A stretch of DNA of 51,846 nt, the filler included, from Bipalium vagum (taxonomy: Eukaryota): the NCBI GenBank assembly GCA_037834085.1. It is 3 parts of 3 records of this genome, joined end to end, with 100 filler letters (N's around TTAATTAATTAA, not from the genome) between each part and the next. Parts side by side here need not be neighbours in the genome. Positions count along the whole stretch, not along the records: positions 1 to 16,346 come from JBBMKC010115275.1; 2 more parts are not named here. One strand, 5' to 3'. The translations under genes were made by a program, and so were the position numbers. The notes beneath the pieces are model-generated. The model was given only the letters and a program-made list of their open reading frames with translations. It did no database searches and was not told where the DNA came from. Below are positions 1,937 through 14,721 of this stretch, one piece after another. The first letter of the stretch is position 1. Every line of letters begins with the position of its first letter.

Positions 1937-2526
1937 ATATCTTAAAAATTTTAAAAAAAATGTGTATCATGTATCAATATTAATGTTATTAAAATTACGT
2001 CGTACCCCACGGATTTCATGCACAGCTACATTCAATGATGAAATTGTGTCTAGATTAATCTTATGTTGACTTTTGTATAGAATCTTAACTCAAAATGTGA
2101 CAGTCAAGAAAAATTAATTGGAAAATCGTTTAAAATAATGAAATGGTTTCACACATTTTAATCGGAAACCGTAGATTACCAAAAATTAAGATGTGGTTGA
2201 ATCAATTAAATTTCAATAAGCAAATAAGAAATATATGACCTGAGATTTGTATTTTTAGAGTAAATCAAATGAGCAGACTTGTGACAGGTTATTTCATTAT
2301 CGTTTAGAATATAATGAATAAGAATATAGCATGAACAGGATGCTAACTTTACATGGACTCAAGAAAGTCATTCCAATATCACAAGGTAAGAGAGAGACAT
2401 AGTTGTATACATTTTTGCTGTGTTGCTAAATAATAGAAAATAAATTGTTATGTATTTAATACAGATTTTCACCAGACAGTTTCAAATTAAGTTTTTAAAA
2501 ATCGTACGGTAAAGCAAATTAAAAAT

Positions 2527-5500
2527 TTAAAACAAGTCTTCAAAATCTAATGAATTTTCTGATGTCACATTTTCTTCGTTATCATCCATAGTGTGGTCTT
2601 CTTCACCAGCTTCTTCTATCTCTTCATTTTCATTGTAACCGGTGTCCATTTCCTTGTATTTGTCGCTTTGATTAAAATTACTTTTCACTTTCAAGCTCTC
2701 TGCCTCTTCATCTTCAGGCATGGCACAGATTTCTTCATAATCTCTTTCCAATTGACAAATTTGTTCTCTGACTTCGGTAAATTCACCTTCCTCCAAACCT
2801 TCGCCGACATACCAATGAACAAATGATCTTTTGGCAAATAAAACATCAAATTTTCGGTCAATTTCACTAAAAGCCTGAGTAATTGCCGACGAATTTGCCA
2901 ACATAGTAACACTTCTCATAGTTTGAGCCATTTCTGAACCGATTACCGAAACGGGAGGTTGACAGCTTATACTCAACTTAAATCCAGTAGGGCACCAATC
3001 CACAAATTGAATGTCTGTTCTGCGTTTAATTTCGAAAACCGCTTCATTGACATCTCTAGGATTAACGTCTCCTCGATATTGTAAGCAGCACGACATATAT
3101 CTGCCAATCGTCACATTGCACCTCACCATTTGGCAGAATGGTTCAAAAATCGCCCTTGTGATTTCTCTAGTACTGATATCCTGGTGCTCGGCTCTTGACT
3201 GAGACAAAATAGGAGCATAGTTTGATAAAGGAAAGTGAATAACGGGATATGGAACTAAATTCGTAACTAATTGAGATAAATCATTGTTCAGAGCATTTTC
3301 AAATCTTAAAGAAACTGTAACGGAACTGAAAACTTGGGCTATTAACCGATTGAGATTGTTGAATGTTGGTCGAGAAATATCAAGACTTAGACCACATATG
3401 TCATATATTGATTCGTTATCCATTAAAATAGTGACATCAGTATGATCTTTTGTCTTTTGAATTGCCATCAATGTGTTGTATGGTTCTACAACAGCTGTTG
3501 ATAATTGAGTTCCAGGGTAAATTACCACCTGAAATTTTGCTCTTTTCGCATAATCGACTGCTAACTTATTTAACAAAAGACTTGTAAAGCCGGATCCAGA
3601 ACCACCCCCATAACTATTGATAATAATAAACCCTTGGAGATTCTCACAATTATAGGCTATTTTTCTTATTCTTTCCATTGTTTGATCAATCATAGTTTTA
3701 CCAATTGTATAATATCCTCTAGCAAAATTGTTTGCAGCATCTTCAGATCCTGATATTAATTGATCAGGATGAAATAAATTTCTATATGGTCCAATTCTGA
3801 CTTCGTCTGAACAAGTAAAATTATTTAATCACATGTATTCGGGACATTCGAAATAAATCGGTAATATTTTCTTATTTTTATTAAACGTCTTATTTTTGTG
3901 AAGTCTCTTTTACCTTAATTTGTTTAGCAAAGCTACTTTTGTTGTGGAGAAAGAAGTTTTAGAATTTTAAAATACGAAAGAAGAACACTAATGTTACAAT
4001 CGTTCCACGTTGAGAAAATACCAAAATAAGTCATTGATTGGTTAGGTTATAGCAAGATAACAATTTCGACATTTAATAATTAAATAATTAAAAATAAAAA
4101 ATTTATAAATTTACAACATCGCTAAAACAAATCTGACATGAAACATTATGACTTTAACATTTAATAAATTATATTCTGTGAATGTTACTGTTTTTACTCA
4201 TGGATAGAAATTATTCACAGTAAATATCAAATTTGACATAAATGTGGACTTTTTGGATTTTGTTTGCTATTTTAAATTAATTTTTTTATTGTTTATGATA
4301 ATTATTTATTTCACCTATTTCTTTATCATTTATTACCTTTTAAATGACTAATATATTTTTATCATTTTTTTTACTTTAGAATTTGAAAGTCGTCATTAAA
4401 ACTTAGTTTATTTAATAGGTCAGCTAACCTCAGCAAATAATGCAGTTGCCGCTAAGATCAACGATCTAAAAAGGAATTTAAAAGGTTTGTATTTATCGAT
4501 GCTATCCTATTATAAATATTAGTAATAGTAATCATTATTAAAATATTGTATTTTATATGATGCCAACCACTGATATTATTAAATACTGGAGTTCGAAATT
4601 CCAGACAATGTTCTTTTTACAGTAAATTTTTATTAATTAGTAGCTCATGTTAATTTTGTGTTGTATTTTTTCTTAGGCACGTACAAAAGTAGAACAAGAA
4701 TTCCATGATCTAACCAGAAAAATTCAGTTATGATCAGAAGATACAATGTCAATAGTCCATTCAAATGAAGATTTTTCTAAAATGCAACACAACCTCTACC
4801 ATTTTGATTTTCAATCTTAATCATATAAGATTAGCACAATTTAATGAGTGCTGTAGACACAAATCAGGCTGAACGCGCTTATTCAAGAGTACCTATTAAC
4901 TTATATTAAGGAGTTTCACAACTTCGATCTTTCCATCAATCAGCTTTAGAGTCACTTATTTAAATCATCACCATCGATATGGTCAGTTGGGGTACTGTCT
5001 TTTTTTAAAAGTCTTCTCTTAGGTATATTTCTCAAATAAGTCGATTCATAATATATATTATAAGTAGTCATTTTGTGAAATTTTAAAAGGCTCAGCTTAC
5101 CAGGAATTGAAGATTCCTTTGAAAACATGAAAAATAATCTTAACCTTTATAAAAATATAAAAACAAAATCAGTTAATAGATAATTAAATATTAAAAATTA
5201 TTTATTAATTTTTAATTACATAATTCATTCAAAAAGTTTCTGGACAAGCCTAAAAAACCTGCTAATTTTTAAAATTTGTATATCATTTAATACTACCAGT
5301 GTGTGAGAGTTACTATTCATTCGTGTGTGTTGATGTATCACATAGTGGTAATATACAACATAGATTTGACTACTTTACTGTAGAGAAGTACTGACTCATA
5401 ATACTGTTGGGTTACCCAAGACACCCACCCGCCAAGATTAGATCAAGGTTCACAAGGAGGGACCGATTTTTGATTAATGATTCAAAAAGGGAATTGACTT

Positions 5501-6935
5501 TCCCTATTTAAAAAACTGGTCTACGACTGATTAGACGTCTGACCAGAACAGTATAAAAGGAGAAGGATTTATCCATAATTTTGCCCGCAATCACGAGAGT
5601 AAATATCTGTAAAATTTTGAAGAAACTCATAACAGTTGATATTCGTTAATATTCGCAAGACTTGCGATAATTCTAAAGAAATGTTCCAATTATGTTATTT
5701 TGCTTGGGATTGTATTTAAGTTCCCCACCAGAGGATTATCTCTGAGCAACTGTGAAGGCCCAGCTGATAGATCGGGAAGCTTGAACGAAGATAAGCCGTA
5801 AAATTATTTTGTTTTGTTTTTCTTTTGACATTATTGATTCTTTATTATTATTAACTATCGCTTATTTTATTTTAAGTAATTTTTTGATTTATTGATTATT
5901 TTACTTTGATTTTTTTAATTAACATTCGGTTTGATTGATTCGACTGACTATTATTTAAGTCATTTGAAACATTTTATACAACGTTTTGATCCCTCTATTG
6001 AGTTTGACGATTTTTTTGTTATTGTTATCACTGTGATTTCGTGTGAGTTATTGTGATATAAATACAAATTATTGCTTTACTGATTGTTGTTATTTTGCAC
6101 CACCTAAGAGTTGGAGTCAGGTTTAGATTTGATATTCTAAATATTGAATAATACTATATGGTAAGACTTAGGTGCCACGAATTGTCACATCAAAGATGAA
6201 GCTAATATTTATAGTACTTCAGTTACTAAATACTCAGGATTAGAAAATAAAACACAAGCTAGGAAAAAAAACGTCGAAAAAACAAAAATAAAACTGAAAA
6301 CTTTTTGAAAGCGGCAACCTTCCTTTAATCGATTTAACTGACTTATTGTGTGGATTATTAATAAATCCACATATCTATAATAAATAATAATAATAATAAT
6401 CTTCACATCTATTCACAGTGATGAAAATTAAATTTCAATAAATAATAAAAGTTAATAAATATGAATTAAAGTATTTTAAAAAACTAATAATATTAAAATA
6501 TTAAATTCATAAATATATAGGACAATGTATCAATTTGTTTTGTTAATTTACAATTTTATTTGTTAATAATTATCTAATTTTATTTTATTCACTCATTTTT
6601 TAACAAAGATTTATAATGATAATTTTAAACTCAAAATATACCTAGAACAGTGGGTTCAAGGTCAATAGAGACACATCTTGGAACATACTGATAACCTCTA
6701 ACTTCTTCAAAAAATGTTCCAAATCCATATTCATTGAGACCCTCTAAATTTTCATTTAGTGTACCACAAGCTTGAATACCATGTTCGATACAAAATAATT
6801 CCCAAGTTGCATTTGAAAGTTGAACTCCGGCTTGACCAACATTCAGACATATTATTTCTCGCTGTATTAGAATTTATTTTTGGTAAATTTCAAGTAAAAA
6901 ATATCCTAACTCACATAAATTGATGAATCAGACAT
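2527..6935 (-). CDS. TUBA: Divergent alpha-tubulin, 3 exons (6935-6915, 6861-6642, 3806-2527), ~506 aa
   Basis: The spliced translation reads MSDSSIY|REIICLNVGQAGVQLSNATWELFCIEHGI...IDLEPTVL|DEVRIGPYRNLFHPDQLISGSEDAANNFARG...GGGSGSG...IQFVDWCPTGFK...FVHWYVGEGLEEGEF. The GT-AG introns are 53 and 2835 nt. An alternative one-codon exon 1 (ATG 6975-6973, donor GTAACC) is also in phase. Confidence 0.93.
4419..5150 (+). pseudogene. Possible decayed tropomyosin-like/coiled-coil exons nested antisense in tubulin intron 2
   Basis: Segments with AG/GT borders read QLTSANNAVAAKINDLKRNLK (4419-4484) and ARTKVEQEFHDLTRKIQL* (from 4677). Further fragments QAERAYSRV and IEDSFENMKNNL follow, in the same order as tropomyosin motifs. 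Confidence 0.3.
5405..6190 (+). mobile_element. Solo LTR-like element in tubulin intron 2 (related to family B; right end approximate)
   Basis: The start TGTTGGGTTACCCAAGACAC resembles the starts at 12766(-) and 38754(+). It has TATAAAAG near 5552 and a T-rich 3' part, and shares block 5430-5532 with 13190-13295(-). Confidence 0.55.
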
Positions 6936-7127
6936 TCTTTAAGAAACAAAGTGTACTAAATTAAATGGTTACCATTTATATTAATCAAATGTAATGATTA
7001 TTTATTTATTTTTAATAAATCAATCTTTCAGTTAATTGAAATATTTCAATTAATTTTTAATCAAATCTTGCACTAATTTTTATATACTTTAAATTCACAC
7101 TGACCATTTTTAAATTTAGAACTTGTA

Positions 7128-8421
7128 TAGTATAACATAAATTCTTGTGAATTTAAAAAACTAATAATTAGTTAATTAATTAATAAACTATAGTAAGTAT
7201 AATAAAAACCAGAACAAGAGTGATTAAAAAAGATATATTTATTCAAAATGTGTTGCCATATCTTTCTAGTACTGAATTTACGCAATTGGTTAGAAATATT
7301 TGCGGTATATTACTGTAATGTTCTTCGATTGCGTTTTTCAGTTCTCATACGGATTGAAAATTTTTGGCATTAACTTTGTTTGATATATGGCCAAAGTCCG
7401 TAATCTACTGGAGTAAAATCTGGATAATAACTTAGTCAAGCAATGGGAATCCTCAATTGATTACACGACTTTCTCAAATTTTTTTTGGAAAGAAACTTTT
7501 GTGATGTTAATGCTGTATGAGGTTCTTGTTGAAAAATACAAATAAAACAAATTTTTACAAATATATACAAATTTTTTTTAGCTTTTAACTCGGAATGATA
7601 TGAGTTTTTATCAGACCCTTAAAACTTTCATCAGTAAAATTTTCGTTAAAAAGAAAGGTGCGATTTTGAAATTTGAAGAGAATCCTGGCCACAGCATAAC
7701 TTTTTTAGGAAATTATTTATAAGAACTTCTAGTTGAAGGTTGAAGTACTCTTCGTGCTGGAGACCAAATCCTATCTGCCTGCTTATTAAGATGAACATTC
7801 AGGTCGAAGGAAGACTCATCAGTGAAAAGAATTCTGTCCAAGAAATCCGTGTATGTTTCAATTTTCTCCAGAAATTTTTCACAGAATTTAAGTCTTTGAT
7901 GAAGTGTAGAAGATGGAACAAAATGTTCATATCTTTTCTGAAACGAAATGAATTTAATTTATTTTTAGAACTCGCTATACAGTTGATTTTGAGATACATG
8001 TACTCAGTGAACGTACAGACGTTATTGGTTTTAATTCTTCGAATAGCATAAATGTTGCATTAAATTTCTTTTCTACTTGGTGGGCTTGTTCCCAACAAAG
8101 ATCCTGTTCTTAAAAACTTGCTAATCAAATATTCTATTGAAGAGTAAGGAATACTTCTTTCCTCTCTATATATTTGTTGTAATGATAATCACGTCGTGTC
8201 TGCATAAAAAACTCACCATGTAAATAATAAAATTTTATGATTAAAAGCTTATCCTCCAATGACAAATCCATTTATAATTCGTGTTGTCATCTAAAACAAA
8301 GTAGTCTGATAAAAAAATACCCTACATTATATACATTTAAAATCTAAAATATCTGTTCAAAAAATATAATTTGAATAAATTATTGAGTTTTTAATTTCAT
8401 AAATATTTATGGGAAATACTA
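7128..8421 (-). mobile_element. Tc1/mariner-superfamily DNA transposon (rosa/maT-like), near full length, transposase pseudogenised
   Basis: It has imperfect ~40-bp TIRs (TAGTATAACATAAATTCTTGTGAATTTAAAAAACTAATAATT versus the reverse complement of 8378-8421) flanked by TA. The minus-strand motifs ILFTDESSFDLN, KVMLWPG, FQQEPH and PDFTPVDYGLW are broken by frameshifts. Confidence 0.8.
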
Positions 8422-10086: not shown

Positions 10087-10643
10087 ATGGGTAGCGATAG
10101 ATCCAGAAGTGGCAAACGTAATAAATTATAAGTTATTTCTCTTTTATGAATTGTATTTATAAGGTAGACATTCAAGATCTCGTTCAAGAGATAGAAACCG
10201 TGATAAGAAACGCGATAGAGATCGTGATAGAGATAAAAGGAAAGATAGGCGTAAGTCCACGTCAAGAACAAGAAGGAGGCGGTCCCGTGAACGCTTACCA
10301 GATGGTCGCTTAAAAAACTATGTCAGAAGATCCTCTTCAAGTTCTTCCTCAATTGAAAAAGAAAAGAAAGTCGTAGCTGAGAGGAAAAACGAGATGAACG
10401 GTAATTAATTTATTTTCCTAATTTTATTTAGATCTGGGATATTTAGAGAAATCTTTGGAAGGTAAATCCGCCGAAGAAATCGAAATGTTTAAAATTATGG
10501 GTTTTGGGTCATTTGATTCAACAAAAGGAAAACATGTGGATGGAAATGATATTTATGTAGCTGATATACAAAAACGGCGCAAATATCGTCAGTACATGAA
10601 CAGAAGAGGTGGTTTCAATAGGCCTCTTGATCGTGTTGATTAA
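10087..10643 (+). CDS. SNRNP27: U4/U6.U5 tri-snRNP 27 kDa protein, 3 exons (10087-10117, 10164-10400, 10432-10643), 159 aa
   Basis: It has an RS/RD-rich N-terminus and the conserved C-terminus [24 protein letters not shown]...[23 protein letters not shown] introns of 46 and 31 nt restore the frame. Confidence 0.95.
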
Positions 10644-14179: not shown

Positions 14180-14721
14180 TTAATTATCAAACATAAAACT
14201 GATATCAGCATTATTTGCAAGCTCTCTATCAATTAAATCTAAGTCGTTAGCGATATCATCTTGCAATTCCAAAATGCAACATTCTATCTTTTGTCTTTTG
14301 ATAATGTTTTCCTTTTTCACCTTATCCGTAGTTTCTTCTAGCCACTGGAAATCACCTAAGATCAATAATTGTTTTATTTCTGAAACAATTCGCAACAATG
14401 ACTCAGCGTGAAATACCTTATTAAAGAATTAACGATAAAAAAAATTGATCAGACTAAACCATATTTGCCGATCGGACATTCATTTCATAGCTATCCATTT
14501 CTGCTTGAGTATAGGGATTTATTTTATCTCTTCTTTCACCACCATCTTTAATATCAATCTGTCATTCATTAAAATAAATGTATAAGAAAAGTTACTTTCG
14601 ATCTTGCTAAAATAAAATCAAAATTATCCAATAAGCTTTTGATGCTATAACTATATCTTTGCTTTAGATTATATAAATATGAATCTTTTTTCGTATTTGA
14701 TGAAATTCGGTTATGAGCCAT
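14180..14721 (-). CDS. MED22: Mediator subunit 22, 3 exons (14721-14596, 14558-14460, 14416-14180), 153 aa
   Basis: The spliced translation ...SIKSLLDNFDFILARSK|IDI...TQAEMDSYEMNVRSANM|VFHAESLLRIVSEIKQLLILGDF matches MED22 motifs (IKS..DNF, YEM.VR.AN, ESL.++VS.+KQ.LIL.DF). The introns are 37 and 43 nt. Confidence 0.92.

Follow-up and report, generated by a model that had tools for sequence, protein, structure and literature searches.

The window, a stretch of 51,846 nucleotides (filler included) from Bipalium vagum, was analyzed by strand translation and Pfam searches, which revealed a tubulin encoded on its minus strand. Exon 2 and exon 3 served as separate queries in every search. The features of the gene, in the direction of transcription, are as follows.

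6975-6973, minus strand: alternative exon 1, consisting of the ATG only, with a weak donor (GTAACC)
6915-6935, minus strand: coding part of the candidate exon 1, ATG plus six codons (Met-Ser-Asp-Ser-Ser-Ile-Tyr)
6862-6914, minus strand: candidate intron 1 of 53 bases (GTGAGT...acag), read from the sequence
6642-6861, minus strand: exon 2, covering codons 2-75 of alpha plus one base of codon 76
3807-6641, minus strand: intron 2, 2835 bases, phase 1, between the codons for alpha residues 75 and 76
2530-3806, minus strand: coding part of exon 3, alpha residues 76 to the end, in an open frame
3244-3312, minus strand: remodelled segment of the T7 loop and helix H8, alpha residues 241-263
3271-3273, minus strand: codon CAA, encoding Gln at the alpha-tubulin E254 position
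2530-2727, minus strand: C-terminal tail, 66 residues past the DYEEI motif
2530-2574, minus strand: last 15 codons of the tail, conserved with respect to the nearest relative
2527-2529, minus strand: stop codon TAA, ending exon 3

The frame of exon 3 is open over 425 codons, from position 3806 to the stop. The acceptor of intron 2 (..ttgttcag before AC, with cag at 3809-3807 and ag at 3808-3807) and the donor of exon 2 (CTAG before gtatat, with G and GT meeting at 6642/6641 in phase 1) are both canonical, and joining the two exons restores Asp-Glu-Val-Arg, alpha residues 76-79. Dozens of paralogs split the Pfam profile at the same intron. The statement in the first-pass annotation that the open reading frame and splice sites are intact was thus borne out. 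The gene is single copy in its own assembly, where the best other DNA match reaches 66% identity.

Exon 2 begins with Arg-Glu-Ile-Ile-Cys directly past an acag acceptor, and two possible first exons lie upstream. The candidate of ATG plus six codons has a consensus GTGAGT donor and would place a short N-terminal extension ahead of Arg-Glu-Ile-Ile; a short extension at the N-terminus is likewise seen in the close relative L001. The paralog L041 has an ATG-only first exon followed by a 48-base intron, close in size to the 53-base candidate intron here, and this structure reproduces the N-terminus of the cDNA-derived protein A7M6D9 (P0136). The exon 1 at 6935-6915 is tentatively favored over the ATG-only candidate, and the predicted protein would comprise about 500-506 residues. 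As modelled, the window gene is one of three exons with good splice sites and an intact third-exon frame, its first exon being a candidate only.

The encoded protein belongs to the alpha-tubulins. Exon 3 matched Pfam Tubulin (PF00091, 1.6e-37) and Tubulin_C (PF03953, 2e-38), and exon 2 matched the start of the Tubulin domain (5.2e-12). The window protein is 57-59% identical to canonical alpha copies of the same genome and 33-36% identical to the beta copies, its core aligns with canonical alpha without indels, alpha-specific insertions such as the eight-residue insert of the S9-S10 loop are present, and maximum-likelihood trees placed it within alpha. The structural GTP site is intact (D98, A99, A100, N101, S140, G143, G144, G146, T179, E183, N206, and N228); among the tabulated GTP-binding positions only T145S and Y224F differ, both conservatively, and exon 2 retains the T1 loop GQAG and Asp69/Glu71. 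Because the alpha fold, the alpha-specific insertions, and the residues of the structural GTP site are kept, the predicted protein should still fold, bind GTP, and pair with beta-tubulin.

A phmmer search against PDB chains was used for fixing the residue numbering. The top matches were all alpha-tubulin chains (8snb_AA and approximately 150 others, E about 1e-153), and the alignment at 59% identity was gapless across residues 77-445. The residue mapping is therefore fixed: exon-3 residue i corresponds to alpha residue i+76, and Gln178 of exon 3 aligns on E254. This result confirmed the earlier reading of the CAA codon at 3273-3271 as Gln in place of E254. The first-pass annotation had also listed V250N, F255L, and Q256V as neighboring changes; all three are present, together with D245E, G246N, and T253S, so that with E254Q seven positions of the loop differ from canonical alpha. 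The range that it gave for the motif, 3262-3300, lies within the motif and falls short of its full 23 residues, which extend over 3312-3244. N249 and D251 are retained. Of the catalytic T7/H8 pair, D251 is present and E254 is replaced; residue 253 is Ser, and no other acidic residue occurs in 252-256. Judged from its sequence, the window protein is an alpha-tubulin by descent and predicted fold that lacks the catalytic glutamate.

To place this substitution among the other tubulins of the animal, the AT-rich genome assembly (440 Mb in 272,664 contigs) was searched. The Pfam Tubulin profile yielded more than 150 exon-level matches, and some tubulin loci contain stops. Of the 69 loci taken into the census, 57 had an undisrupted exon-3 frame of 300 codons or more, and at least 50 of these were alpha-like, a lower bound. 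Canonical copies and several divergent groups carry Glu at position 254. Gln occurs in at least 15 genes, the window gene included, and the exon-3 frame is open in all 15. In a second group, of 11 genes, the residue is Val, Ile, or Ala (for one row, the choice between Ile and a gap varies with the alignment), and single genes have Thr, Asp, Ile, or Ser.

Two maximum-likelihood trees were computed (IQ-TREE, LG+C20 PMSF, quick search, beta-tubulin outgroup, with SH-aLRT as the sole support measure). All planarian Gln sequences fell into one clade, with support of 94 in the first tree and 96 in the second. In the second tree, this clade holds 29 alpha-tubulin paralogs and orthologs, 28 with Gln and one with His, including Schmidtea polychroa Q7Z1L8, Dugesia ryukyuensis A7M6D9, and several unnamed proteins from public assemblies. 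The rows nearest to the window protein are L002 and L001 (97, 99-100); L002 is 81% identical to it overall and 89% in the core. The window protein shares the clade context TNL(V/I)P(Y/F)P with Gln254 and has a long noncanonical tail. Throughout the clade, the binding residues for the GTP of alpha itself are conserved. On this topology, one change to Gln would suffice. The Val/Ile group forms a separate clade (97-99), which indicates at least two losses of the catalytic Glu. Within the Gln clade, approximately half of the members have Asp at 253, and one subclade (L032, L035, L036, P0125, and Q7Z1L8) additionally has Asn at 251.

These data bear on whether the Gln codon is real. An error at one base, with GAA as the true codon, would be conceivable in an assembly as highly fragmented as this one. 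However, Gln is found in 28 independent homologs drawn from several assemblies, this one included, with two named database entries among them, six neighboring residues are changed as well, and the contig set of one public run, possibly the source sample, contains 0.99 of the 31-mers sampled from 2400-7000. Because 28 of the 29 clade members carry Gln, encoded at 11 loci by CAA and at 6 by CAG, the base-error reading was rejected; we assign it practically no probability. The use of both codons also indicates that Gln was maintained through synonymous turnover. The first-pass annotation had proposed examining orthologs for a retained Glu; the relatives keep Gln instead.

The strength of selection was estimated by Nei-Gojobori counting of dN and pS. 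Between the window gene and L002, pS was 0.80, which is past the Jukes-Cantor limit, so that dN/dS can be used for this pair only as an upper-bound argument; dN was 0.12 overall; the 359-codon core gave 0.07 and the tail 0.44. Other pairs of the clade that allow an estimate gave dN/dS of 0.08-0.14. With synonymous sites saturated and a core dN of 0.07, the window gene is under strong purifying selection, and the ratio is far below the value near 1 that had been named beforehand as evidence against a functional gene.

This constraint is difficult to reconcile with a duplicate that is decaying or drifting neutrally, a pseudogene in the making. Such a fate is suggested by the very large family to which the gene belongs, given the number of Pfam matches and the loci interrupted by stops. 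The window gene itself, however, has its long open frame and intact splice sites, its core has changed little while synonymous sites became saturated, Gln has outlasted the turnover of its codon, and the GTP-binding residues are conserved. Selection, codon turnover, and the kept GTP-binding residues together argue against both a pseudogene and a base error; we rejected the former as well and regard it as very improbable, if slightly less so than the latter.

Two further observations concern transcription of the clade. The clade member P0290 is a full-length protein of 476 residues on a 1460-base contig without an intron, and the L001 contig likewise has no intron. Contigs of this kind are expected of spliced mRNA and suggest, indirectly, that clade members are transcribed. 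In the contig search with the window gene's own ORF as the query, no contig encoding it was found, and the search of public sequencing runs turned up one contig set and no RNA run.

Canonical alpha-tubulin has a short acidic tail ending in Tyr or Phe, a Lys40 acetylation site, and an N-terminal MRE(C/I) motif. In the canonical E254 copies of this genome, the tail measures 14-18 residues and mostly ends in EEY, whereas tails in the Gln and Val/Ile clades range from 40 to approximately 290 residues. The tail of the window protein, 66 residues long with 24 acidic residues and 4 basic ones, has Phe at its end. Its last 15 residues are identical to those of L002 at 14 of 15 positions, whereas the rest of the tail is approximately 45% identical; the conserved end is a possible C-terminal recognition motif. 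The K40 loop, encoded by exon 2, contains no lysine. A long acidic tail with a conserved end, the lack of Lys40, and a probably altered N-terminus suggest that this isotype would have separate readers and regulation.

The consequence of losing Glu254 can be judged from work on other tubulins. In the lattice, alpha E254 and D251 together complete the GTPase site of the underlying beta subunit, and QM/MM simulation identified E254 as the catalytic base (PMC10319017). Microtubules of recombinant human alpha-E254Q retain GTP, undergo no catastrophes, bind EB3 along the lattice, and are mildly curved (PMC11893814). The E254A and E254N mutants are inactive as well, and their lattices are expanded (PMC8764682). 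Since human alpha-E254Q is hydrolysis-deficient, a natural hydrolysis-blocking alpha isotype appears to be the likeliest reading of the window gene. We consider it probable that the gene is a functional, single-copy, divergent alpha isotype that blocks hydrolysis, from a clade in which Glu254 changed to Gln once and was then kept through many duplications. A built-in hydrolysis-deficient subunit had been proposed at the outset; with the substitution real, the gene intact and constrained, and human E254Q hydrolysis-dead, that proposal would be the most economical one, and the part that changed is that the gene is one member of a large Gln254 group and not a single odd paralog. The accompanying suggestions, use in very stable structures or a non-lattice role, are both tentative.

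Under the hydrolysis-blocking reading, a dimer that joins the protofilament with Gln254 would be unable to deprotonate the lytic water next to the GTP of the underlying beta subunit. That GTP would be left unhydrolyzed, and by analogy with the published E254 mutants, each longitudinal contact made by a dimer of the window protein would block hydrolysis in this manner. The lattice would then be held in a stable, expanded, EB-binding GTP state without catastrophes; in mixed lattices, the dimers would form GTP islands favoring rescue. The most likely use may be in long-lived microtubule arrays of specialized cells. Male germ cells are a speculative first guess, based on the S. polychroa gene, which is reportedly testis-specific.

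The measurements on E254Q come from human tubulin, and with seven differences within 245-256 the present protein may behave differently. An ordinary dynamic isotype would be one in which hydrolysis is kept by compensation (through D251, a neighboring carboxylate, or a water wire) and Gln merely tunes the rate. D251, the second residue implicated in catalysis, is retained here together with N249. The Asp at 253 in many clade members could conceivably compensate, and the milder substitution E254D slows hydrolysis without abolishing it, as mentioned in PMC10319017. The window protein itself, however, has Ser253 and no other acid nearby; human tubulin also has D251, and yet its E254Q lattice keeps GTP (PMC11893814); and the replacement of D251 by Asn in one subclade argues that catalysis is not being preserved. 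We therefore regard an ordinary dynamic isotype as unlikely.

Only slightly more credible, in our assessment, is a role outside the lattice or at its ends, in which the protein pairs with beta-tubulin and acts substoichiometrically. As a plus-end stabilizer, it would lock the GTP of the terminal beta subunit; alternatively, it could serve in nucleation or as a template, buffer beta-tubulin, or help to build a nonmicrotubule structure, for instance the central core in the 9+'1' axoneme of flatworm sperm. Seven positions are changed on the T7/H8 surface, which meets the next dimer, the tails are long and very diverse among paralogs, and the presence of at least 15 Gln paralogs and 11 with Val, Ile, or Ala suggests specialized uses. 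Pure E254Q lattices are curved in vitro (PMC11893814), so a lattice made exclusively of such dimers may be unfavorable. Against this role, the core is 57-59% identical to canonical alpha with no indels, purifying selection acts across the whole core, as expected of a subunit that fits the lattice on all sides, and nothing in this analysis points to a specific alternative partner.

We compared the window protein with known systems. The UniProt entries Q7Z1L8 and A7M6D9, planarian divergent alpha-tubulins, are the nearest to it by descent: they belong to the same clade and have Gln254, an alpha-type core, and long noncanonical tails. They represent other paralog groups, however, at 56-57% identity to the window protein; A7M6D9 is 91% identical to the paralog L041, other paralogs group with Q7Z1L8, and the subgroup of the window protein, L002, and L001 is without a named member. 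By these protein relationships, the genome would most likely be placed among the dugesiid planarians. Q7Z1L8 also has Asn at 251, where the window protein has Asp. We found no discussion of position 254 in either protein in the open-access literature.

By mechanism, the nearest system is the engineered human alpha-E254Q, in which the same residue, aligned without gaps, is replaced in the same way. It was made in the laboratory as a point mutation of alpha-1B that left the rest canonical, whereas the planarian change is natural and ancient and is accompanied by six further loop changes, the 66-residue tail, the lack of Lys40, and approximately 41% overall divergence.

At the intradimer interface, beta-tubulin carries Lys254 in place of the Glu of alpha, and alpha-bound GTP is never hydrolyzed; beta copies of this genome read ..DLRKL... 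It offers a precedent in nature for the silencing of a tubulin GTPase site through replacement of the T7/H8 carboxylate. The window protein nevertheless differs from beta-tubulin in being clearly alpha, as the identities given above indicate.

The nearest parallel in nature is coccidian alpha3-tubulin, in which D251 and E254 are replaced by Thr and Gln/His, the C-terminal tail is very long, and the N-terminal regulatory MREI motif contains an insertion; slow or no GAP activity and polymer stabilization have been proposed for it (PMC10056924). Gln, a long tail, and, provided that the exon-1 model holds, a modified N-terminus are features of the window protein too. In contrast, the planarian protein keeps D251, and alpha3-tubulin is one gene as opposed to many planarian paralogs. 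Because the apicomplexan lineage is unrelated, its origin is independent of the planarian clade. The pairing of catalytic-residue loss with a long tail and (probably so in the planarian case) a changed N-terminus suggests a recurring evolutionary recipe for stable microtubules.

Since coccidian alpha3-tubulin is published, the concept of a natural alpha isotype without E254 is not new. In the open literature searched, we found no flatworm report of an alpha-tubulin without the catalytic Glu and no report of a large duplicated clade with the exact E254Q under strong constraint. Publications on planarian testis markers, TTBK, and the Fasciola genome contained no mention of these genes. The planarian genes add a second independent case beside the apicomplexan one, a natural E254Q family that has been under purifying selection long enough for synonymous saturation.

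What the GTP lattice is like, and whether microtubules in the GTP state are ever maintained by cells, is an active question, which has been studied through nucleotide analogues and engineered E254 mutants. If the hydrolysis-blocking reading is true, these genes would supply physiological hydrolysis-blocking tubulins that can be purified, imaged, and knocked down in a tractable animal, and they would permit a test of the in vivo use of the GTP lattice. More tentatively, and with somewhat less than even confidence, we suggest that natural GTPase-dead alpha-tubulins arose and underwent massive duplication in planarians and possibly in flatworms at large (the Gln clade and the Val/Ile clade, with long tails of their own). 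Some of their arrays would then be permanent GTP-state lattices, with stability and readers set by the choice of isotype rather than by MAPs or modifications. The size of the alpha-like family is itself notable for studies of the tubulin code.

The distribution of the substitution beyond planarians was examined with a profile search of 1.84 billion cluster representatives. Among the best 150, residue 254 was Glu in 86, Gln in 9, Asp in 11, and Val in 3, with other residues in the remainder. Among those Gln clusters, two have named members, which come from Fasciolopsis buski (a fluke) and Sparganum proliferum (a tapeworm). In the second tree, the fluke and tapeworm proteins have long branches and stand at open forks relative to the planarian clade. 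A search of the protein atlas returned generic tubulin clusters only, the top one of which was commonest in Platyhelminthes.

We searched the organism's own genome assembly (G000) outside the window and identified a very large tubulin family (loci L003-L072). More than 150 exon-level matches to the Pfam Tubulin domain were found, and at least 50 alpha-like exon-3 frames were intact; most of the alpha-like loci shared an intron at codon 76. The beta-like loci numbered approximately 10, and their diversity was far below that of the alpha-like loci.

The trees revealed that, in addition to the Gln-254 clade that contains the window gene, in a separate second clade of alpha-tubulin paralogs, E254 is replaced by Val, Ile, or Ala (support, 97-99). 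This clade comprises the G000 loci L042, L043, L044, L050, L053, L055, L057, L060, L061, L064, and L067, the tails of which are 44-290 residues long, and it lost the catalytic glutamate independently. Within the Gln-254 group, one subclade, comprising the G000 loci L032, L035, and L036 and the proteins P0124 (S. polychroa) and P0125, also exhibited a replacement of D251 by Asn on top of Gln-254; therefore, this subclade has an amide side chain at each of the two positions implicated in catalysis. Parasitic flatworms likewise possessed divergent alpha-tubulins in which residue 254 is Gln, namely P0286 of Fasciolopsis buski (KAA0189647.1) and P0263 of Sparganum proliferum (BHF84084.1); judging from the tree, their origin may be either shared with or separate from that of the planarian clade.

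We further compared the window protein with its two nearest relatives, L001 and L002. L001 is a 677-residue open reading frame on an intron-less ENA assembly contig of 2431 bases, and represents either a transcript or a retrocopy. It was 68% identical to the window protein; its core was divergent beyond approximately residue 375, and its Ser/Lys-rich tail comprised 239 residues. The comparison with L002 revealed a near-identical segment at the end of the tail:

2530-2574, minus strand: final 15 tail residues of the window alpha-tubulin, terminating in Asp-Leu-Phe

Outside these residues, the tails of the window protein and L002 were approximately 45% identical. The final 15 residues may constitute a recognition motif for tail-binding proteins.

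Three further features were identified in the window:

about 7250-8320, minus strand: broken reading frames upstream of the tubulin gene
10455-10643, plus strand: open reading frame for the conserved C-terminal domain SNRNP27 (Pfam PF08648, 4.5e-29)
14183-14398, minus strand: open reading frame weakly matching the Med22 subunit of Mediator (PF06179, E 1.8e-5)

The broken frames look like the remnant of a Tc1/mariner-type transposase, and a Pfam search of short pieces of them yielded no match. The Med22 match scored 25.4 bits, slightly below the cut-off of 26 bits. The SNRNP27 frame probably forms the final exon of a gene encoding the U4/U6.U5 tri-snRNP 27 kDa protein.
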